Under the pieces are notes generated by a model. It saw nothing but the letters and a program-made list of their open reading frames with translations, was not told the DNA's origin and did not search any database. Position numbers and translations under genes: made by a program. This document shows positions 18,248-61,330 of a DNA stretch of 64,000 bases, one piece after another (positions within the stretch are counted from its first letter, which is position 1; each line of letters opens with the position of its first letter). The stretch spans positions 97,203 through 161,202 of the forward strand of contig CDMY01000224.1 of assembly GCA_001179505.1 (NCBI GenBank), in the 5' to 3' direction. This DNA is from Vitrella brassicaformis CCMP3155 (taxonomy: Eukaryota; Protista; Chromerida).

Positions 18248-20681
18248 ATGTTTATTCATAGAGGAGCCGCTGCGTGCGCCGCGCTGCTTCTCGCCCTCTC
18301 CCTGCCCTTCCCACCATGTCAAGCGACCCGCCCACTGCGCCGCCAGACGTCATGCCTCGGCTTCGCCCCCTGCGTCACACCGTCTTCGCCCAGGCGCCAC
18401 CTGTCAGCATCAGTACGGCCGAGGAGGCCTCTGTTATCGATGTCGGCCACTGCCGTCATAGATGCGCCGCCAGAAGAGGCAGAGCAGAGGGCGGCGCCAC
18501 CCATCCCAGCGCGCGACAAGCCCACAGGTCTTCCCCTTTCTCTGGTGGTTGGCAATGAGCCGATCAAGATAGCCCTCCTGCTGGCGGCGGTCAACCCCCT
18601 GATGGGCGGCGTGGCTATCGGCGGCCGCCGGGGGACGGGCAAGAGCGTCATGGCCAGGGGGCTGCATCGGATCCTGCCTCCGTTGGAGGTGGTCAAGGGC
18701 AGCTCCTTCAACATCGACCCCAACAAGCCCGAGGAGGTGGATGATTTCCTCAAGGAGCAGCTGGCGGCGGAGAACAAGACGCTGGACCAGCTGGACAAGG
18801 ACATCATCCCGACGCCCTTCGTGCAGGTGCCGCTTAACGTCATGGAGGACCGCCTGGTGGGCTCGGTCGACGTCGAGGAGTCGGTCAAGCAGGGCAAGCC
18901 CGTCTTCGCGCCAGGCCTGCTTGCACGCGCACATCGGGGGGTGCTCTACGTCGACGACCTCAACCTGCTCGATCCCGAGCTGGCCAACATCCTCCTGTCG
19001 GTCATCTCGGACGGCTGGGTGCAGGTGGAGCGAGAGGGCATTTCTGTGCGGTACCCGTGTCGCCCTCTGATCGTCGCGACATTCAACCCGGAAGAGTCGG
19101 AGATGCGCGAGCACCTGCTGGACCGGCTGGCTGTGAGTCTGTCGGTGGACGCCACGCCGCTGACCGACTTGGAGAGGGTGCAGGCCGTCGAGGGGGTGCT
19201 CAAGTTCGGCAACTCCAAGCACAATGAGCAGATGCTCAGGGAGGCCGAGGAGGAAGAGGACGAGCTCAGGACCAGAATCATATTCAGGTGGGTGCATTCA
19301 TGACAATGACACACACATGCTGACTGACTGACCAGTCAGTCCATCGGATGGATCACTCGTGTGTCTTTGTGTCCTGTCTGTCAGTCGCGAGTACCTAAAG
19401 CGCGTCAAGTGCACTCACGACCAGATCAAGTACCTCTGCGAGGAGGCCGTCCGTGCCGGCGTGCAGGGCCAGCGCGCTGAGATCTTCGCCTGTGAGGTCG
19501 CCCGCGCATCGGCGGCCCTCGACAACCGCGACAGCGTCACATCCGATGACCTCAAGCTCGCCGTCAAGCTGGTCATCGCCCCTCGTGGCGTGTTCCTGCA
19601 GCAGCCGGAGAACATGATGCAGCCGCCGCCCCCTCCGCCCCCGCCCCCCCAGCAGGACACGTCTGATGAGGACACCGAGGAGGACAAGAAGGAGGACGAG
19701 AAGGACGAGGATGAGAAGGAGGAGGACCAGATGCCCGAGATCCCGCAGGAGTTCATGTTTGACGCAGAGGGGACGCCCATTGACGAGGAGCTCATCAACT
19801 TCGTCACCAAGCAGCAGAAGGGCAAGAGCGGCGGCAGGGGGCTCATCTTCAGCCAGGACAGGGGCAGGTACATCAAACCCATGTTCCCAAAGGGCAAGGT
19901 CAGGCGGCTCGCTGTCGACGCGACCATGCGGGCGGCCGCCCCCTACCAGCGGCCGAGGCGGCAGCGGGCTCTGAAGGACGACAAGAAGCGCTTCACCAGC
20001 AGCGGCAGGGAGAGGAAGGTCTTCATCGAGGAGGCTGACGTGAGGGTCAAGCGCATGGCCAGGAAGGCCGGCGCGCTCATCGTCTTTGTCGTCGACGCGA
20101 GCGGCTCCATGGCCCTCAACCGCATGAACGCAGCCAAGGGCGCGGCCATCTCTCTATTGTCCAAGGCGTATGAGAGCCGCGACAAGATCTCCCTCATCAC
20201 GTTCCAGGGCACCGACGCAGAGGTGCTGCTGCCGCCGACCCGGTCGATCGCCATGGCCAAGCGGCGGCTGGAGACGATGCCGTGTGGTGGCGGCTCCCCG
20301 CTGGCGCACGCCATCAACGTGGCCGTCAAGACGGGCATCAACGCGCAGAAGAGTGGCGACGTGGGCAAGGTGGTGATAGTGTGCATCAGCGACGGGCGGG
20401 CCAACGTGGGTCTCAACGAGAGTGTGGAGAAGGGGAGGGTCACTGAGAGCGAGAAGCTGGACAAGGAGGCTATGAAGGCCGAGGTGCTCGACACAGCCAG
20501 GGCGCTGCAGGGGCTGCCCAACTTCCACCTGGTGATGCTCGACATGGAGAACAAGTTTGTGTCGACGGGGCTGGCCAAGGAGGTGGCCGAGGCGGCGGGG
20601 GGGAGGTACTACCAGGTGCCCAAGGCAACGGAGCGCTCTGTTACCGATGTCGCCGTCGGCGCACTGGCTATGGCCAGGTGA
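18248..20681 (+). CDS. chlD: Magnesium-protoporphyrin IX chelatase subunit D, nuclear-encoded and plastid-targeted; 2 exons (18248-19287, 19385-20681)
   Basis: AAA+ module with LPLSLVVGNEPIK, GGRRGTGKS, PGLLARAHRGVLYVDDLNLLD and HLLDR; Pro/acidic linker; vWA domain with FVVDASGSMALNRM MIDAS. The N-terminus is a hydrophobic signal peptide followed by an S/R/P-rich transit-like stretch. The intron joins IFS|REYLK in frame. Confidence 0.95.
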
Positions 20682-38609: not shown

Positions 38610-38909
38610 NNNNNNNNNNNNNNNNNNNNNNNNNNNNNNNNNNNNNNNNNNNNNNNNNNNNNNNNNNNNNNNNNNNNNNNNNNNNNNNNNNNNNNNNNNN
38701 NNNNNNNNNNNNNNNNNNNNNNNNNNNNNNNNNNNNNNNNNNNNNNNNNNNNNNNNNNNNNNNNNNNNNNNNNNNNNNNNNNNNNNNNNNNNNNNNNNNN
38801 NNNNNNNNNNNNNNNNNNNNNNNNNNNNNNNNNNNNNNNNNNNNNNNNNNNNNNNNNNNNNNNNNNNNNNNNNNNNNNNNNNNNNNNNNNNNNNNNNNNN
38901 NNNNNNNNN
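38610..38909. other. Assembly gap (300 N)
   Basis: N run after a poly-C tract. Both flanks share gcaccgaaccc, suggesting the contigs overlap. Confidence 0.95.
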
Positions 38910-43741: not shown

Positions 43742-46700
43742 TCATGCCATGCCGGCGACTGCCTTCTTGACGGGCCCCACGGTGCACGAGTTGACCTTGG
43801 CTGCGAAGCGGAGGGAGTTGAGGGTCTCGTTGAGGTGCATGGCCAGGGGAGACACATTCACAAACATCAACGTCTTCGAATCGCCACCTGCAGCCCCCCA
43901 GCCATAGACAGACAGACAGACATTCATGCGGATGGGCCCTTCTTCTCTCCGTCTGTGTGTGTGTGTGTGTGTGTGTACCGAGTGAGTCCTTGAGAAGCAT
44001 GGTGAGTTTGGAGTTGCGATAGGGCACGTGGCCCACACCACTGCTACCCTTCCCAGACGCACCACCACGGCCACCTGCATGCGCAAATGGCCACATCATG
44101 TGCACATGGGATGTGCGTGGCGTGCATCTGGCTGGCGGTCTGACTGACTGACCCATGGGGGTGGGTGGCCTCTTCTCCCCGAGCGCACAGATGACATCTC
44201 CCAGTGCGCTGAGGCTCCTGTTGATGCTCTGCGTCTCGCGCAGGCGGTCCCCCGTCACCTGAGACTTCTCCACACGCTCAGAACCCGCCAAATCAATCTG
44301 ACACACACACACACACACACAGTGACGACAATGGACAAAGGGTGCGGATCTTAATCCTTCCTGCTGGCTGACCAGCGAGAGCAGGCCGCCGACACTGGCG
44401 TTGCCCTGGCTGGCATCTTCGCCCAGGATACGCAGCTGAAACACACTGAATGATACATAGATGGATGGATGGAGAACACACACATACACATGGAATCGAC
44501 GGCCGGCCGTGTGTCTGTTTGGGGTATGTGTGTGGTGTGTGACCTATGGCTACGGGAGCTGCGGGCGTTGCATCGGGTCTCGGCTGTGGCACTGAAACCA
44601 AGGAAGGACACAATGAATATACATAGATGAGACGATCATGATTGATATGCGTGTAGGCTGCGCTGCCTACAGACCGGTTGCCGTGGGCCTGGATGAGCAG
44701 CTGGTGCACCTGGTGGGGGGCCGTCACGGGCACTGCATGGCATGGATGACACACAGATCACACACACCATAATGGCATTCGTCTCTACCGGTTTTGATGT
44801 TTGATACGACGACCACGCCCTTGCCGTCGATCTTGATGTCGGGCACCACCCCACCGCCCTCATCCTTGTCAGACGCCAGCAGATCGCGAACCGTCTCGTT
44901 GTATATCTATCTAGACACACACGGGTCGGATGCATGGACACACACGACACTGCCTGGCCTGGCCTGGGGGAGATGGGGGACCGACCTCTATGAAGGATGC
45001 CTCCACTTTGAAGGACCAGCCGCGCCTGAATGGTGTGAGTGACCTACCTGTGTGTGTTGGTGTGGTGTGCATGGTATGGTGCCCACCTATCTACCTCTGG
45101 AGTGTCTGTACGGTGGTGAATATGAGGTCGACGGCGCGCGGGATCATGCCCTTTGATTGCTGATGGATGCCATTCCATTCCACATACAACATACATTCGT
45201 TCAGGTGTGGTGTTGGTTGAGCCAGCCCCTCTCTCACCTGCCACTGCTCCTCAGATGCGTAGTTGTCAGGGCCCTGCGGGTGGTGGACAGCATAACGGTG
45301 CACAGCATCCACCATTTGGATGGATGGATGGATGTGTGTGTGTGTGACGTACCTCCATGGTGTAGGTCTTGCCGGATCCCGTCTGTCCGTATGCGAAGAT
45401 GGCCACCCTGTAGCCGTCCAACGCACTCTGAACCAACCTGATAGACAGACATCACATCGATGGATGGGCACAGAGAAAGAGACATGATTGGTGGACTGAC
45501 TGACGCTTGTACGGGTGTACAGGTCTCCCTCTCTCTGTCTGTCGCTTGTTTCCCATCTATGTATGTATGAGTGTGTGTGTGTGTGTGTCTTTGTGTGCTG
45601 ACTGTGCAATTTCCTCAAACACGACCGCCTGGGCCGCGTTGGGGGCGAACACCTGCACAACACACATAGATGTGCTCAGCCGTCCGCCTGAATGCGTTAT
45701 CGGTCAGGTAGAGTACCTTACCTACCTTATCGAATGTGAATTTGTATTGGTTGGAGTGTTCGTTGAGTCCATCCACACTGCGCATCTTGGCCGAGCACAG
45801 CGTCACCCCACAGCCGTCGGGACTCAGCTCAAGCTGACCCTCGTCCAAACCGTCAGACACCTCACGACCTGCCCACGTACGTGGACATACACGACAGGAC
45901 ACAGGTGTGGTGTGGTCTGTCTGGGTGTGGTGTATGTGTGTATGCCAACTCACTACTGCGCGGTCGGATTCTGCAGAAGACACGTATGTTGCCTCGGAGC
46001 TCTTGTGCGATGTTGTGCAGCTTCTTCCGGAGTGCCTCGGTGGCGTGCGAGTCCTCTAGCAGACGGACTAGATACGCCTCCATCTCCTAAGCACACACAC
46101 ACACACACAAACACACACAGAGGCGAAATGCAAGCAGGGAGGAGATGTGTGGATGTGTGGATGTGTGGGTGTGGGGGTAGGTATAGGTATACCGTGAAGT
46201 ACCCCTTGAGTTGGTCCACTTGTTTCTGCTGCGCGAAGGCCTCGGCGTGCTGGGTCTGTGTGAGGGCGCAGCCCAGCCAGACACACACCATCCGTACCGT
46301 ATGTGTGTGTGGTGTGGTGTGTGTGTCGTCCCCCACCTCCTTATCGTGTTTGAGTCGCTCGATCTTGGCCTCGTCCTCAGCTATCAGCGCACGCGTCTGG
46401 GCCGCACCGCTCTGACATGCACACACACACACACACACACGCACGCATATGTGTGTGTTCGGCCACTCCACTCCTCGGTGGTTCTTCCCTACCTTGAGGA
46501 CCTCATTTTGCTGTTCCTGTGCGATGATTTCCTTGTCGAGTGCGGCATTGTCGGCCTCCAGGGTCTCTATCGACACACGCAACTCCTCACTCTCCGTCTG
46601 ATTGATGCATCCACCCCATGATACACACATACACACACACGGCAGGTGTGATGATAGGCTGGGCTGCTGGGTGGTGTTGTCTGCCTGCCTCATAGTTGGT

Positions 46701-47954
46701 TTCGAGCTCCTCCAGCTGGCGCAGACTCTCCTCACGCTCGGCCGCCATCTCTACCTGCACATACAAAGCGCACAACACACACACACACACACATGGAGGT
46801 CGGCCGATGAAGTGAAACACGTGCGCATTGCGTTCATTCACGGATTGGGTGGCAGGTTGACTGACCTTGGCCTGGTCAAGCTGCTCCAGCTGCTGCTTCA
46901 ATTCCTCTAACTCGCTACGCAAACGGCTCTCTACACACACGTGTGGTGCACAGCACACATCGACACACACACACATACATACATATAAGTGCAGCCCAGC
47001 CATAAGACCCCTCTTCTTCGTTTCGTCCCCACCCTCATCGGCCGTCTGTGAGAGCCGGTTCGCTAGCTCCAGTTTCTTGGCCTTCAGCTCCTCCAAACTC
47101 ACATGCGGGGGCGGACCACCACTCCCACTACCCCCAGCAACACCAACACCATGGACGCCGCGCACACGTGGGGACGCAGCCCGACGGTTCGCCGCATGAG
47201 ATGGGGGATGGCCCGCAACTCTGGTGGGCGGCTGGTGGTGGTGCTGGTGTGTGTGTGTGTTGGGTCTCTCCTTGAGGTTGGCTATAGGTACGCGTCGTCC
47301 GCCGGGTGGGAGGGGAGGGATGCCGCGGGAGGGGTGCGATGGATTGCCGGCCTCACGGGCTTCCCTGCAGATGGGCGGGATGGATAAGAAAGGACACGTA
47401 TACACATCAATGTGATGTGCACTGTGGCGCAAGGGCACTCACTTGGCGCTTGGGGCTCGACGAGCGGCGGTCTGAAGGGAAAATAGGATGGATGGACGGA
47501 TGGATACCGCGAGTTGACCGCAGCAGTTCCTTCCTTCCTTCATCTGCTTACCTTAGTATCTTTTTTTTATATATATATGCTTACCTTAGTATCTGATGGC
47601 ATGGCTCTCCCTCTGGGCTCCCTCCCCGGCGTCTTCGCCCGCCGCATCGACACATCCTTGTCCGACAACGCCGGCGACGGATGACGCACTCTGCGCATCC
47701 GCACACAGCCATCAACACAGCGATCACCATTGCGCCATCTATGTGTTCGTTCTTCCTTACACTTTGGCCCCCGAGGATGCCGTGTGGCTGGCGTACGAAG
47801 CTGACGCATCCCCGCCCCTGGGTGTGCCCGTGTCGGACGCCGTGTCTGTCGGAGGGACGGATGGCTGCTGCAGCGGGACGTTCCTGGCAAAGATGCTCTT
47901 GGCGAAGATGCTCTTGCGGGTCGGCTGCCTCAATTGGCTCTGAAAGTCCCTCAT
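43742..47954 (-). CDS. Kinesin-14 (C-terminal, minus-end-directed motor; KIFC1/Ncd/Kar3 class), many exons
   Basis: N-terminal disordered region and coiled coil. Neck [24 protein letters not shown]; P-loop [14 protein letters not shown]; switch I NARSSRSH; switch [10 protein letters not shown]; [44 protein letters not shown]. Confidence 0.92.
47546..47594 (-). mobile_element. 16-bp direct repeat flanking a 17-nt AT/poly(A) insert that duplicates a splice donor (TSD-like footprint)
   Basis: gcttaccttagtatct at 47546-47561 and 47579-47594. The minus strand reads agatactaag-gtaagc, atatatatataaaaaaa, agatactaag-gtaagc. Confidence 0.55.
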
Positions 47955-48015
47955 CGAACCCGCCCTCCTGAGCGTTTACATTCGCAAGGAGGGGATCGCG
48001 GAGGGGAACGAGGGA

Positions 48016-51000
48016 ATGGCGGACGAGAGCGAAATGCTGTGCCCTGTCACGGTGAGCAGTAGGAAAAACTCGAAGAATTTCATCGCTACCGTTCACTGCA
48101 TCTCTGCTTTTCCTTCCAGGTGGCCGTTCGCGTAAGCGCCATATAGATCAGGCCTGATCCATGGATCTGCAACACACACACAGACGCATACAAGAACCGC
48201 ACGGTATTTTGTTCTCCTCCTTTCCGCCTGCAGATCCGTCCGTTCCTTCCCGACGAGGCCTCGCTGGGCGATGACGTCGCCAGCCAGTCGTCCATCGACA
48301 CCCCCGACCCCCACACCATCATCGTCAAACTCGACACAAACACATTCATACCACAATCCCAGCAGCAGCAACAGCAGCAGCTCCAGCAGCAGCACTCACA
48401 GGCGGCGGCTGATGGCGATGGCGTTGACGGTGTGGTGGCGGGGTCATCCGCCAATGGCAGTGATGGCCGTTTGGAGCAGCTGACGGTGTTCACTGCGGAT
48501 GCGATATTGGGTGACCAGGAGTCGATGTTTGAGGCAATAGGGATGCCGCTGCTGAGGAATGCGCTCGAGGGGATGAACGGGGCCCTCATCGCTGTCGGGG
48601 CAAAAGGTGAGTCAGTCGGCCAATGGGGGGATGGGTGGATGGAGGAGGGGGAGATCACGCCAGGCCAGGGGAGGCATTGGGTGTTTGTGGATCTTCTTTC
48701 TGCCCGTGTGTTTGTACGTGTGTGTGTGTGCAGGCACGGGCAAGACGTACACTCTGCAGGGCACGGAGGGTAGGCCGAGCCTTTCCTTTTCCTCCCTCCC
48801 CTTTTGTGTGCCGACTCACTCTTCTTGTCTCGTCTCCCTCGCGTGCAGCCGAGCCAGGTCTCATCCTCCGCATACTCAAAGGTAATGAACAAACAGACGG
48901 ATGGATGGACTGGGTGGATGGATGGATGGATCGGACAAATCACATCTTCAGAGTTGTTTCGTTGGGCCCGCGAGGTGGAGGAGTCGCCCGTGGCTGCGGC
49001 AGCACCTGCAGAGATGGCATTCCGCACAGCCAAAGTGCGCGTAGCCGTGTCGTTCACGGAAATCGCCCACAACAAAATCAGGTTGGTCACGCACACACAC
49101 ACAGACAGAGAGAATGAGGACAGGTGGGGGGACTCGTGGAGAGCGTGTGTGTGTGTGTGTGTCGTGTTGCAGGGATTTGTTGGTTCCTCGTCTGGGCGGC
49201 AGTGCCGACCTGACACTCTACGAACACCCGGAATGCGGCACATTCGTACCGGCACTCACACACGTAAACCAGCCCCCCCCCCATGTCTCGATGACGGCAC
49301 TCGCGTCCCCTCTGCACCTTCGTGTGTGTGTGTGTGTGTTTATAGGTTGCTGTGGATAGCGAGGATGAGGTGTCGAGCCTGTTGTCGTATGCGCGTCAGA
49401 AGCGCCTGGCCCACGCCGCCACCATGAAGGACATGGAGTGGACGGCACACACACTCTTCACCATCAAAGTCGCACAGGTACGCCACGCCACGCCAGCAGA
49501 CCCGTAGACAGACCTTCCTTGCAATAAATCCATGGGATGGATGCGTGTGTGTGTAGGTGCTTGCTGACGGGAGTGTAGCGCGTGTGAGCCGTATAGAGTT
49601 GTTCGACATCGCATCGACGGACGACTGCCGCCAGCCCGACACATCCCCACCCACATACACAGCAGCCGGCACCACCACAGAGGAGGGCTTCCCGCCCGGC
49701 CGGCCCATCAACCCCTCACTCACTGAGGTCGGCACTGCACTGCATGCCCCGCCCCCTCAGCCAGCACACAGTGTATGTATGCCTCTATATCTGTATGTGT
49801 GTGTGTGTGTGTTGATGCGTCCATCGATCAGTTGGGCATGTTGATTGGGCAGTTGGGGATGCATCAGGGGAACGGGGATAGTGGGGAGGGGGAGTCGGGC
49901 AGGCAGAGTAGCCGTATGGACGCATCACGCATTATCGACGTCTGGGGGCCTGACTGTCAGCCACACAAACACACACACACACAGATACACAGATAGAGAG
50001 AGATGGGCTTGTGTTGTGTGATGTCTGTGTGTGTCATTCATGTGTGTCAGGTTTCCGTGCGTCAGGATCCAAGCTGTGTCTGCTGTTGAAGGATGCACTC
50101 ATGGGCAACTCCAAAACCTGCGTACGCTGCTGGCCGCTTCCTGTCCATCTCCCATTTCATGCCTGCCTGCTATAACATGACTGTGTGCAGATGGTGGCCA
50201 CGCTGTCCCCGACTCGCCGAGCGGCCGCAGGCTCACTCATCACCATGAGGTCTGTCTTTCTGTCAGCCGTACGAGCGCACACGCCTCCATCCATCCACTG
50301 ACTCGTTGGCCGCGTGTGTGTGTGCAGGTTGGCGGGCTGTGTTCGTCAGCTCAAGACGCGCCCCGTCGTCAACTTCGACCACTCTGACAGACTCATCAAA
50401 GAAATGAACCGGGCAAGTTGTACATGGCCACCGCTGACATCCTTATGTGGTTTCCTTGTCCATCCATCCACCCACCCACTCATCAGGACATAGAGTTCCT
50501 CCGTGCCCAGCTGGAGTATGCAGCCGAAGGCACGCACATCGAAGACCTCAAAGTATGCGGCATGCACAACGCAAAATGATATGTGTGTGTGTGTATCGGG
50601 TTTGGTTTGCTTTTGCGGCAGTTGGCGTTGTCTGACCGCGAGCGGCTGATCCAGCAGCTGCAGTGCCTCGGCAACGAACACGACAAAGAGGTGCAACGCA
50701 GAGCAGACGGCTTCGAACCAAAACATGTGTGTGTCTGATGCAGTTGGAGCGCACCGCGTTCCTCCACAACCATCGCCTGCTCGCACTCCGGGACTGGGGT
50801 CTCAAGGAAGGTCTCACACACACACACACCCCCCAAACAAGGACCATCCCTACCACTCCTTTGTGTGCGTCTTTTTGTATGTATGTGTGTGGGTGAGTGT
50901 AGGTTACCAGGTGCCAGCGTCGTTTGGGGGCGAGGGCGGTTTGCTAGCCAAGAGCACCCCCCGGCACATCCCACACATCGCCTCCGACATACTCAATGCA

Positions 51001-54000
51001 CTCCCATACCTCGAAAACATCTCGGACGTACACACAACACAACCACATAAAGCTTCAAAGCTCCCATGTCAACGGTGCCGGCATTGCCTGTTGTGGTTGT
51101 GGTTGTGGTGGTGTGTGTGTTTGTGTGTGTGTTTGTGTGTGTCACACATGCGATGCCATACAGGGTGTGGGTGAGTCGAGCGGCGTGCTGCAGTACCCTT
51201 TGCTGCCGGACATGGACTTCACTGTCGGCGCACGACTCGACAACAGACTCCCACTCAGAGCACTTGGTACTCAGCACAACAGACAGATCACTGCGAGGTG
51301 GATGGATGAATGGGCATTCATTGTAGCTGTGTGTGTCACTCGCTTGCACCGACAGGCATCCCGGAGCGCTTCTGTGTGCTGACTTACGACCAGAACAACA
51401 AGCAAGTCATCCTTCAGAAGCTCGCCAGAGGTACCTGCAGGACACACCGAGACAGAACAATACACCAGATGCCCACATCAACACACACACACACACATAC
51501 ACCTCCCTCTCGCTCTCCGCTCTGCAGGTGGTGCGTATCATTTGACGGTCAACGGTCGCGAGATCGGTGCGGGCGAGCGCGTGACGCTCTTCAACGGCGA
51601 CAGGATCATCCTGGGGCAGGCACGTGCGATGCGGCTGGTCATGCCGGGAGGGAAGGGGGGCAAAGGGCAGGGGTATGAACCCGATATGGGCATGGGGTGT
51701 GAGGATGGAGAGGAGACGAGGCTCGTGCCCGCCGCCACTCTGCACGCAATGGAGGTAGGTAGGTACCTATGTGTGGATGGATGGATGGACCGACAGAGAG
51801 ACCATGGTGGTACATGGGTGCGTGTGGTGTGTGGTATGTGATGGGGTGTGTGCAGGTAGAAGTGTTGGAGAATTCTCCCGAGCAGGACGCCGTGCTCGAC
51901 ATGCTAGATAGCGTCAGGGTACGCACTCACCAAAGGCACCCGCATTGCATTGCCGTGTGTGCCCTCCCTCCCCTTCTTCGTTCTTTCATGGGCATACAGG
52001 ATGTGTTGGGTTTGTCGAACAGCATCATTCCCTTCATGGCCCGCCAGATCGGCGAGGCTGACCTCCTCGTCAAAGAGGCGGTGCGTGCGTGACGATGCAT
52101 GCATGACACTTCCTTTTCCTTCCTGTCTCATGTATGTCTCTCTCGTGACATTCCCTCCCTGCACACAGAACGAGATACTGAGTGAGTTGCGTCCCGAGGA
52201 CCACCTGCAGTTTGCCGTCGAGATGTCGCTGCCCGTCTTCCCACACGACACAGAGGAACCCACCACCGCAATCCCACAACTCGTAAGCCACCGAGCGGGC
52301 AAGGGAAGGAAACGAACGGCGTCCATTACAATGCATTGCGTCCATTTTTTGATGTGTTCGCTCGCCGCAGGCCGTGCGTTTGTGGCGTCACCCGCACGTC
52401 CCCGTCGACATCAGGGGCCTCACCTCCTCACCCACCAGACGGCTGGCCTTGCACAAGGAAGACATGCAGTCGCAGCAAGAAGCTGACGGCCTGGATGCCA
52501 ACGCAGACACAGAGGGAGAGGGTGGCGAGGAATGCCAAGAGCAGAAGACCATGGCCCAGCCACAGCCACAGCCGCTGCTGCTGTGGCAGCTCGACCGGTT
52601 CAAGGACCGGCTTGACGCCATGCGGGGCGTGTACCAGGACTTCGTGACGACTCAGATGGAGGGAGGGGACAGCGAGTGGACACTGAATCCCTCTAGCGAG
52701 CCGTGGCGCGACCTCACGGGCAGCGAACTTGCCAAAATCACACTGCAGGTATGTTTGCCGGTGATGGGAAGAGATGGATCGCAACGGATGGTGTGATGGT
52801 GTGATGGTTGCAGGAGAAGATATGCTTGTTGGAGCAGCGGGAGGCGGAGAGACAGGCCCTCGAGATGGAGCACCTCACCATGCCGCACCAGGCGGGCGGC
52901 CCATCCTCAAACCTCATGGCCCTGTGCGGAGGCGGACGCACCATACACATCAGCCAGGCGGTCAGGCGAGAATTCTTTATTTTCAAAGCTGATTCCCCAT
53001 TCCCTCCCTTGTTTGTTTTGGTGTGCGTGCAGATGTGCCTCCCTGACCGTGGATCGTACGAGGACGAAGAGAACGACAGCGACTTCGCACACTACCCACA
53101 CATGACCAGACGCAACAAATCCGACACCGCACTCGGAAGGTGAGCCAGCCAGTCACACCGCATCGAACACCATATGCGCACCCCATCCTCTTTTATCTCT
53201 GTCTGTGTTTTAGGAGGCGGGTCCCCAAGAAGCCTGCAGTTGTCCCGAAGATCATTACGATCAGCAGCGGCAGCAATCGCCCCCACGAGACGTCCACCGC
53301 GTCCAAGTCCACAGGCCGCAGCAGCAAGACCAGGCTCATGCAGGGGGGCCGTGCCATGTCGTCGCGTGACACCGGGGCCGACGAGAGCGGCGGGGCGTCA
53401 CCCAAACAGAGGGGGCCATTCGCTGGGGCGACCTCCATGGTGTCCGGCGGCCGCAAGAGCTCACCCACAGGTGGTGCTGGTGCTGGCGTTGGCGTTGGTG
53501 CTTCTGAGGTGGTGCCGAGGGGGGCGGACTCCGCCCTCCGCCTCAATGAGGAACTGGCAAAGGTGAGGAAAGATGCACGGCTGGGATCCCCATGCTGCCG
53601 ATCTTGTCTTCTTTGGCGTTGTGCAGTTGCGCGGTCAGTACGGTCGGCTGTCGAGTGAGCACTTTAGCCTCAAAGCTGCCCACATTCAACTCAAAGTACC
53701 GTTACGACACACAGACGACACACAGATGATGGCGCCTGCAGTGAGATCCATCCATCTCTCCACCCTGTGTCTTCGCGCAGGACGAGGCGGACAAGCTGCG
53801 CACACAGCTCAGGAAGAAGACGCCACGCACCCCAGCACCCCCGGCAAAGGAGGCCGCCGTGCTGAGTCGGCATAGCCACCCAAGATCACATACATTGCTG
53901 ATGTATTGACGCGCGAGGGTGCGTGTGGTGTGGTGTGGTGTGGGTAAATCAGGTGATGTGGAGGCATCGGCCAGGGCGCAGCTGCTGGGGATTATCAAGG

Positions 54001-55980
54001 AGGTGGAGGGGCTGCAGAACACAGAGCAGCAACTGGTGACGCGACTGCTCAGCACCACTGGTACATACCTGTCCACCTATGTGCAGCAGGGAGACACGCA
54101 GAAACCTGTATGCTCACGCCTGTGTGTGTGCGTCAGAGATGAGTGCTGGCAAGCGCCGCATTGGGCTCTCCGCAGCAGAAGTAGATAGACTCCGATCAAG
54201 ACTCGGTAACACACACACACACACACACACAAGAAATCTCTCCTTGACCTCTTCTCGTATGCTATGTGTTGTGTCTGTTTGTCTGTCTGTCTGTCTCCAG
54301 AGACGTTGCAAGCGCTGACCAAAGAGCAGGTGGTCAACGTGCAGGCCATGCGCGGCATCCTCATAAACACTCAAGAACCACCGCCCGGCAAAGACACACT
54401 GCCGCCCCAGACCAACATCGACTCGACCCCCGCAGCCAAGGCAACCGAGGTGGCCGCGCCCGGCCGCCTGCAGTGGCCACACACGATAACATACCTGAGC
54501 GCGCCGGGCGGGGGTGTGGCCGGTCGGGGGTATGGTATGGCGCCACCAGCTGCATCAGCGGCCAAGTGTCCACCTGCCCCTGCCCCTCCCCTGTACAAGG
54601 CCACCTACAGCTACTACCCCGCACCGACGTATGCCAGCCCCAACCAACGAGGGGTGGGTCAACACAGAAAGGATCAAACAGGCAGGCACGGAGGCAGGCA
54701 GCCAGAGAGGAAGGAACGAACATGTGTCTCTCTCTCTCTCTCTATTTCCCTCCCTCCCTCTCTGTGTCTGTAGGGTCCCATGTCGGGTGCGTATGGCCCG
54801 TTGTATGCCCAGCTGCAGCGCGGCTCCAACCAGTACATCCCCAAACCAGCATACCCACCGCCAGTAGGAAGAGCAGCCCCCATGGCAAAGGCACCCTCAC
54901 CCACACCCAGCACCACCGGCAGCTGGCAGGACGCCGTATCGACGGCCATCCGGGGGATCCCCTGGCCCGGCGCGCAACACCTCTCCTATCAGGTCAGAGT
55001 GACCGACAGAGAGCCACGCACACAACATTCACATAAAGACATCTCACCAAAGGACCTTCCTGCAGGCGCCGGTGATGGGCAGCCGTGAGGGCCCGACGGC
55101 AGTACCCATGACACATCGAGAGGGCAAGAACGAGCCAGTTGGGCAGGAGGCCGCGCCACAAGTGGTCCCGAAGTCCCCGCCACTTGACAAGACGGCCAAG
55201 GCGTTCCCTGCACCAAAGAGGGGAGCTGGCGAGCAGGACAATCTGCGGACGTTGGTGCGGTCTGCGAGTATGGGCATTCACGACAGAGCCAACCCGGTGA
55301 GCACAGAAAGAGGTGAAAGAGATGCGCCTCTTTGTTGCTTTACAAATGTGCTGTCGATTGCTTGACGCAGCCTGGGATCAGCCGTGTGACGTCAGTGCCG
55401 CATTTTGGAACGTATATACGATTTGATGTTGGAGAGAGAGGAATCGACAGCGACATATACCATGCCATGCTTGATACATTTATGTGTGGTGCAGTGGTGG
55501 GGCTGTCTATCCGGCCGGCATGCCATCCTACCCCTACCAGGCTGCATCTGTAGCTACGTCGCCTATGGTAAGTTGCCTGCCACCTGTACAAACAACCATC
55601 CATGGGGACTACTCCTCTCTCCCTTTTTTCTGAAGCTGGTGTCGCGCCCGCCCGTCTACCTGCCCATCACCCCCCCGCCCCACCCATCCCACCACCAGCA
55701 GCACCAGCACCAGCACCAGCAGCACCAGCAGCATCAGCAGCATCAGCATCAGCGATACAACATCTATCCGCCGCCCGCCATGGCATACACACCCTCGCAG
55801 AGCACCCCAGACCTACGAGGCGTCACCCGACAGACCACGGCACCCCACACACACGGCATCACCACCACCACGCAGCAGAGGGCGCCCTCACTCGTATCGC
55901 GTGTGGTGGCCGGTGCAGGCAAGCTGTGGACACAGACGACAGCAGGCACGTCAGATGGGCTGGCGGACTACCAGCAGTGA
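48016..55980 (+). CDS. Kinesin-3-like protein (N-terminal motor, FHA, KIF1-type domain, long low-complexity tail) with a degenerate motor
   Basis: Motor segments: VAVR|IRP, ALEGMNGALIAVGAK|GTGKTYTLQG, VAVSFTEIAHNKIR|DLL, LYEHPECGTFVPAL, SKLCLLLKDALMGNSKT. FHA region: LPYLENIS..VNGREIGAGERVTLFNGDRIILG. KIF1-type: WQLDRFKDRLDAMRGVYQ..EPW. The 3' end is the least certain part. Confidence 0.8.
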
Positions 55981-61030: not shown

Positions 61031-61330
61031 NNNNNNNNNNNNNNNNNNNNNNNNNNNNNNNNNNNNNNNNNNNNNNNNNNNNNNNNNNNNNNNNNNNNNN
61101 NNNNNNNNNNNNNNNNNNNNNNNNNNNNNNNNNNNNNNNNNNNNNNNNNNNNNNNNNNNNNNNNNNNNNNNNNNNNNNNNNNNNNNNNNNNNNNNNNNNN
61201 NNNNNNNNNNNNNNNNNNNNNNNNNNNNNNNNNNNNNNNNNNNNNNNNNNNNNNNNNNNNNNNNNNNNNNNNNNNNNNNNNNNNNNNNNNNNNNNNNNNN
61301 NNNNNNNNNNNNNNNNNNNNNNNNNNNNNN
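61031..61330. other. Assembly gap (300 N)
   Basis: N run following a poly-G tract. Confidence 0.95.

Follow-up and report, generated by a model that had tools for sequence, protein, structure and literature searches.

In the Kar3 partners Vik1 and Cik1 a non-catalytic domain with the kinesin fold still contributes microtubule binding; this motor-like domain lies at the C-terminus, is devoid of a nucleotide pocket and shows almost no sequence similarity to kinesins. We describe here a gene on the forward strand of a 64,000-nucleotide (nt) stretch of the Vitrella brassicaformis CCMP3155 genome (assembly GCA_001179505.1, contig CDMY01000224.1, positions 97,203–161,202; "the window", to which all coordinates below refer) which encodes what we shall call a pseudo-kinesin: the Walker A motif, the RxRP motif and the alpha4/alpha5 face of its motor head are retained, and switch I no longer has Ser-Ser-Arg, nor switch II its Gly and Glu. 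Unlike Vik1 and Cik1, it carries its head at the N-terminus, keeps Walker A and is recognizable as a kinesin in sequence. The likeness to Vik1 which an initial annotation of this DNA had drawn is a loose one, extending to the presumed non-catalytic head but not to the absence of a P-loop or the C-terminal position of the Vik1 domain. Strict membership of the Vik1/Cik1 group is ruled out by the N-terminal head with its Walker A motif.

KIF7/Costal2, of the kinesin-4 family, resembles the pseudo-kinesin in that a kinesin head has been reused as a non-motile, microtubule-binding scaffold (PMC12919046). It differs in belonging to another family and in having recognizable switches and a low ATPase activity important for microtubule release, whereas the pseudo-kinesin is without these sensors. 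The kinetoplastid KIN-B, an orphan kinesin which partners KIN-A in the chromosomal passenger complex, is likewise a protist protein in which coiled coils come after an N-terminal head predicted to lack activity, and works in a complex (PMC10987093); the pseudo-kinesin differs in having kept Walker A and the alpha4/alpha5 motifs. KIF26A and KIF26B (kinesin-11) are described as kinesins without ATPase-driven motility which function in signalling or adhesion (cited in PMC12919046). They are a metazoan family with another tail and no FHA domain. The likeness to kinesin-3 proteins (KIF1A/UNC-104, KIF13, KIF16, KIF14, KIF28) lies in the N-terminal motor, the short coils followed by a putative FHA-like domain, and a KIF1B-like lead in the tail; the differences are the degenerate switches I and II and an L12 loop without a K-loop. 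Pseudo-kinesins of Vitrella or Chromera were not the subject of any paper that our literature searches returned, and to our knowledge no non-motile kinesin with kinesin-3 architecture has been described.

The motor head

The initial annotation had reported an intact P-loop together with two degenerate switches, and all three motifs lie where it placed them: KDMEWTAH (switch I) at 49427–49450, DIASTD (switch II) at 49605–49622, and the Walker A motif GAKG/TGKT, which is split by an intron (48607–48733) into 48597–48606 and 48734–48747. The flanking strands that it listed (LFTIKV, SRIELF and SKLCLLLKD) are also all found in the head. Its range of 48560–50420 includes the motifs but is too narrow for the motor, which extends over approximately 48120–50412, in a gene running from 48016 to beyond 53562.

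Two nucleotide motifs of kinesins are kept, N4 (RxRP, as VAVRIRPF, residues 13–20) and N1 (the P-loop GAKGTGKT, residues 138–145), the latter differing from the kinesin-typical GQTGxGKT in having Ala for Gln and Lys for Thr. At N2 (switch I) EWTAH stands opposite SSRSH in the alignment and the His alone is kept, and at N3 (switch II), where DIASTD stands opposite DLAGSE, the Asp is kept, Gly is replaced by Ser and Glu by Asp.

The reference for this alignment was a canonical motor of kinesin-14 type, encoded within the window on the other strand and made by joining its conserved open segments approximately and inexact at the splice junctions. Against it the joined pseudo-kinesin head scored 17 standard deviations above shuffled sequences (z = 17). 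The aligned pairs (kinesin-14 first) are GQTGSGKT and GAKGTGKT, the match continuing through TGKTYTL; NARSSRSH and MKDMEWTAH; and DLAGSER and DIASTDD. In the same alignment alpha4 of the pseudo-kinesin reads INPSLTELGMLIGQLG and alpha5 reads FRASGSKLCLLLKDALMG.

Pfam Kinesin (PF00225) matches occur collinearly in three exons, at profile positions 29–83 (13.2 bits), 170–212 (13.7 bits) and 281–299 (13.3 bits); each is below the family cut-off of 29.3 bits, and their rough sum is approximately 40. Four exons searched singly against PDB yielded nothing useful: exon 48234–48605 gave a kinesin-2 head at no better than E about 1, and the switch I, neck and FHA exons had no match at E ≤ 10. By its similarity along the whole motor domain we assign the head to the kinesin superfamily.

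Conservation in a metagenomic relative

A HMMER search of the whole library with exon 48234–48605 returned one protein, P0001, a 182-residue open reading frame (ORF) fragment from a cluster of one member. Its source is L001 (European Nucleotide Archive metagenome assembly ERZ893784, contig k147_186320, 3,146 bp), which is approximately 87% identical at the nucleotide level to window positions 46825–50054 and covers the pseudo-kinesin gene from its start through the L12 exon. L001 is from a close relative of the window organism and indicates a second Vitrella-like lineage in public metagenomes.

Between the window and L001 the exons are 96.9% identical (35 mismatches) and the introns 83.8% (119 mismatches and 125 gap columns; Fisher test, p = 1e-23), and the intergenic spacer is 71% identical. 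The only exon indels, of 6 nt and 3 nt, lie inside the polyglutamine (polyQ) and Ser runs; every splice site is kept, and no residue differs in the P-loop or in either of the degenerate switches. The ratio of nonsynonymous to synonymous substitution rates (dN/dS) is 0.26 over all 379 codons, 0.13 in the L11–L12 part and 0.07 in the 211-codon motor core, where there are 2 nonsynonymous and 9 synonymous changes (p = 1e-4 against neutrality). The N-terminal polyQ and Asp/Gly/Ser-rich insert (48234–48500) is fast-evolving by comparison with this near-frozen core, having a dN/dS >1 with 10 nonsynonymous changes versus 1 synonymous. The degenerate head is preserved by purifying selection, at least over this short divergence (synonymous divergence, dS, about 0.07). 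The value for the core, and exons which are far more conserved than introns, agree with the proposal that selection acts upon the fold and that the locus is not decaying; neither the overall ratio nor that of the core is near 1, the value which, together with a lack of transcription, had been named as a refutation.

Word-index protein searches, one with the ORF that holds switch II and one with the exon of KIF1B-like sequence, gave no match, the length window of these searches hiding full-length relatives, and no relative was found in a scan of Joint Genome Institute (JGI) metagenomes with the switch II exon.

Gene structure and transcription

The gene model, built by hand, begins with the ATG at 48016 on the plus strand and contains at least 27 exons through 53562, the tail extending further. 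When spliced it gives a frame of 1,108 codons without a stop, versus approximately 22 stops expected at intron composition. Of its 26 introns 25 are GT-AG and one is GC-AG, all acceptors being AG; the sole GC donor (GCAAGT) lies directly after 50412 (window 50413). The median intron of the model is 82 nt, and the window as a whole is GC-rich (57.7%) eukaryotic DNA in which short introns are numerous, with many TG and GGAT repeats.

Public contigs were compared with 47900–53800. A 4,678-nt contig from run X5 (depth 63) is spliced as modelled: the letters of a 12-nt micro-exon are present, as are the joints 48768>48848, 48879>48950, 52282>52371 and 52959>53032, and contig positions 445–866 measure 422 nt, as do the five exons within 48734–49477 taken together. 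The contig has 1,015 nt between 49557 and 51528, which are matched if the alpha4/L12 exon ends at 49955; this donor was chosen because, in a minimal-change test, it was the sole single boundary change which fitted that length. The switch II exon is a direct piece of the contig and the switch I exon is included by length arithmetic. Small spliced contigs from run X6, which belongs to a different study, cross two of the tail introns (52282>52371 and 52959>53032). Both runs were taken as RNA because many GT-AG introns have been removed. In its joints, its micro-exon and its exon-length sums the X5 contig agrees with a locus transcribed and spliced as originally read. A six-frame motif scan found no alternative exon on the plus strand of the locus which would restore SSRSH or DLAGSE, and the only canonical switch copies that it returned were those of the minus-strand kinesin-14. 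The pseudo-kinesin gene is real and expressed. Its features are as follows, "the contig" being that of X5.

48016–48051 (+): coding exon 1 (MADESEMLCPVT), start codon at 48016; the spliced contig starts approximately 23 nt upstream, and L001 conserves both the ATG and the exon.
48120–48131 (+): 12-nt micro-exon GTGGCCGTTCGC, encoding VAVR, the start of beta1 and RxRP; the contig has the letters GCCGTTCGC between 48054 and 48234, and the exon is 100% identical in L001.
48234–48606 (+): exon 3, with IRPF, the polyQ/acidic insert, alpha1 to beta3 and the P-loop as far as GAKG; contig piece 48234–48607, Pfam Kinesin 13.2 bits.
48734–48769 (+): second half of the P-loop, TGKTYTLQGTE; spliced joint 48768>48848, 100% identical in L001.
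48849–48881, 48952–49081 and 49173–49263 (+): three motor exons, alpha2 to beta5; joint 48879>48950 and length sums.
49346–49477 (+): switch I exon, with MKDMEWTAH at 49424–49450; Pfam Kinesin 13.7 bits, aligned to kinesin-14 NARSSRSH, motif identical in L001.
49557–49727 (+): switch II exon, with LFDIASTDD, a long L11 rich in Pro and Thr, and the beginning of alpha4 (INPSLTE); contig piece 49555–49725, aligned to DLAGSER, motif identical in L001.
49832–49955 (+): alpha4 and L12 insert exon; donor 49955 inferred (alternative 49913) and conserved in L001.
50051–50121, 50191–50249 and 50328–50412 (+): alpha5 (FRASGSKLCLLLKD), beta8, alpha6 and neck linker (VVNFDHSDRLIKEMNR); Pfam Kinesin 13.3 bits, frame and length arithmetic.
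50487–51027 (+): four heptad-like exons between the neck and the FHA region; open frame, GT-AG introns, length arithmetic.
51164–51266, 51356–51430 and 51528–51754 (+): FHA-like region, three exons; sub-threshold Pfam FHA match, ESM Atlas feature search, contig piece 51526–51752.
51856–51918, 52000–52080, 52169–52282 and 52371–52748 (+): tail exons, first part; contig pieces and joint 52282>52371, the last exon holding the KIF1B-like LLLWQLDRFKDRLDAMRGVYQDF.
52814–52960, 53033–53139 and 53214–53562 (+): tail exons, second part; contig pieces and joint 52959>53032.
53563–55980 (+): further tail, Pro/Tyr/Gln-rich and of low complexity; the contig runs 1,333 nt spliced past 53562, and open segments are visible.

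The boundaries of the tail exons were moved to GT-AG, which leaves the product unaffected. The (GGAT)n and (TG)n microsatellites of the introns are dispersed in the genome and give rise to spikes in contig depth and to many false joints at 48885–49278 and 51643–51839.

Relationship to kinesin-3

The order of domains is N-terminal motor, neck linker and neck, short coils, FHA-like region, KIF1B-like segment and a long low-complexity tail. This order points to a kinesin-3 architecture, and does not establish membership of the family. The assignment to kinesin-3 in the initial annotation agrees with the domain order but not with L12, the insert of which contains, in 33 residues, 0 Lys, 3 Arg, 4 Asp and 2 Glu; since it is without Lys and has a net charge of −3, there is no lysine-rich K-loop. 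A resemblance of the neck linker and neck (VVNFDHSDRLIKEMNRDIEFLRAQL) to the kinesin-3 motif VNEDPNAKLIRELxxEVxxLR is a lead only.

The four heptad-like exons (50487–51027) would represent the neck coil and a CC1-like coil; exon-level Pfam searches found no family in them. The Pfam FHA match scores 14.7 bits (cut-off 20.7), covers positions 44–67 of the 67 in the profile, and falls in the last exon of a region which is split over three. In an ESM Atlas feature search with this region 17 of the 20 matches were FHA clusters (best score 0.94, 201 shared features). Set against the FHA consensus, the phosphothreonine-contact positions within 51164–51754 look substituted (GAR for GR, and IPERFCVL for the I..EHC.F of kinesin-3 FHA domains), and the FHA domain may therefore also be non-canonical.

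Among named Atlas clusters, those closest to the tail exon with LLLWQLDRFKDRLDAMRGVYQDF bear PF12423 (KIF1B; score 0.88, 148 shared features), again as a lead only, and Pfam itself gave no PF12423 match on this exon. Pfam searches of the other tail and coil exons found no domain, the cargo domains PH, PX and CAP-Gly included.

The neighboring kinesin-14 and other features of the window

The gene which supplied the reference motor adjoins the pseudo-kinesin:

43742–47954 (−): kinesin-14-type gene, multi-exon, with a canonical P-loop, SSRSH and DLAGSE; six-frame reading, motif scan and alignment.

Its putative ATG (47954, minus strand) and that of the pseudo-kinesin (48016, plus strand) are 61 nt apart in a head-to-head arrangement which is also present in L001. 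This spacing is suggestive of co-regulation of the two genes. At window position 18623 (plus strand) a Walker A reading, ...GGRRGTGKSVMARGLHR, resembles the AAA+/Mg-chelatase-I type of P-loop and presumably belongs to another gene. The window contains two assembly gaps of 300 N each (38610–38909 and 61031–61330).

Proposed function and alternative explanations

In kinesins the switch residues Ser and Arg (switch I) and Gly and Glu (switch II) shut the active site around the gamma-phosphate and position the attacking water; they also transmit the state of the nucleotide to the neck linker and to the interface with the microtubule. Replacement of the switch II Gly by Ala is the standard rigor mutation of these motors (PMC10987093). 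At the level of sequence the pseudo-kinesin head keeps the kinesin fold with its adenine and phosphate pocket (RxRP, Walker A GxxxxGKT and the Tyr after GKT), and through the conserved alpha4/alpha5 face microtubule binding may persist. The gamma-phosphate sensors are gone, EWT having taken the place of Ser-Ser-Arg in switch I, and Ser and Asp those of Gly and Glu in switch II. Switch mutants of other kinesins suggest that a head of this kind may still be able to bind both nucleotide and microtubules; its switches could presumably not close, and it would have neither useful ATP hydrolysis nor coupling to neck-linker docking. Its most likely part would then be that of a static microtubule anchor, possibly gated by nucleotide, which presents the FHA region and the tail as a scaffold. 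A non-motile scaffold role would follow from the known switch I and II mutants by a logic comparable to that for KIF7.

The best explanation of the locus, and in our judgment a probable one, is thus an expressed pseudo-motor of kinesin-3 architecture acting as a static microtubule-binding scaffold. Much more tentatively, and with doubt prevailing, we suggest a hydrolysis-dead, nucleotide-binding kinesin-3 which forms a rigor-like or ATP-gated anchor with an FHA and KIF1B scaffold, and which is part of a chromerid-specific set of pseudo-kinesins whose task would be to assemble or pattern stable arrays of microtubules (pellicle, pseudoconoid, flagellar apparatus) and not to transport cargo.

The head might instead be the non-catalytic half of a dimer, joined through the neck coil and the coils to an active kinesin (a kinesin-3 paralog or another motor) and supplying a second head for microtubule binding, the complex being motile though this subunit is not. 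Pairs of a dead and a live head are known, KIN-A/KIN-B being one (PMC10987093) and Vik1 or Cik1 with Kar3 another, and the heptad-like exons follow the neck. The canonical kinesin-14 gene lies 61 nt off, head-to-head, in an arrangement kept in L001, but its motor is C-terminal and that of the pseudo-kinesin N-terminal, so that in a parallel coiled coil the heads would sit at opposite ends. This geometry does not suit a pair of the Kar3–Vik1 type, and adjacency is no evidence of interaction. Kinesin-3 proteins, moreover, mostly homodimerize, and we regard a partner head as unlikely.

A decidedly more improbable view is that the head is an unorthodox but active ATPase or motor, in which a slow hydrolysis, sustained by the P-loop, the Asp of switch II and the residues that have taken over (Asp for Glu, Ser for Gly, Thr for Arg), cycles microtubule binding. 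Walker A, RxRP and the Asp of switch II are indeed kept and identical in L001, and even the non-motile KIF7 requires ATP turnover to leave microtubules (PMC12919046). However, three residues of switch I (Ser, Ser and Arg) and two of switch II (Gly and Glu) have all been replaced together, and single changes at these places are established to abolish microtubule-stimulated ATPase in the kinesins studied (for the Gly rigor mutant, see PMC10987093). The divergence of the motor exons, at approximately 13 bits per exon in Pfam and with nothing useful in PDB, and the dN/dS above 1 of the N-terminal insert could suggest a young transcribed pseudogene, or a mis-modelled gene with a normal-switch isoform. 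This is largely refuted, and we give it hardly any credence: against pseudogene and mis-splicing alike stand the 1,108-codon open frame where about 22 stops were expected, the matching spliced transcript, the lack of a canonical switch segment in the locus, the core dN/dS of 0.07 and the greater conservation of exons than of introns.

Several points weigh against the static scaffold which we favor. Selection was measured at a dS of about 0.07 against one relative, which could in principle be a paralog, and deeper orthologs were not found in any more distant lineage, although exon-level searches are nearly blind and their silence is uninformative. Runs X5 and X6 are not on record as RNA, their nature being deduced from the spliced contigs. 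The predicted loss of ATP hydrolysis is read from motifs alone. Finally, the alpha5 motif has a two-residue insert, and L11 and L12 are remodelled with the K-loop absent; affinity for microtubules could therefore be weak.

Significance

Non-motile kinesins are already known from kinesin-4 (KIF7/Costal2), kinesin-11 (KIF26), Vik1/Cik1 and KIN-B; what would be new, as far as we know, is the kinesin-3 architecture. Because Walker A and the microtubule face are kept, every gamma-phosphate sensor is lost and selection is clear, the pseudo-kinesin offers a natural test of nucleotide binding uncoupled from hydrolysis. At the present stage its practical impact is modest. For the biology of the organism, the pseudo-kinesin may help to explain the stable microtubule arrays of the free-living relatives of apicomplexans.

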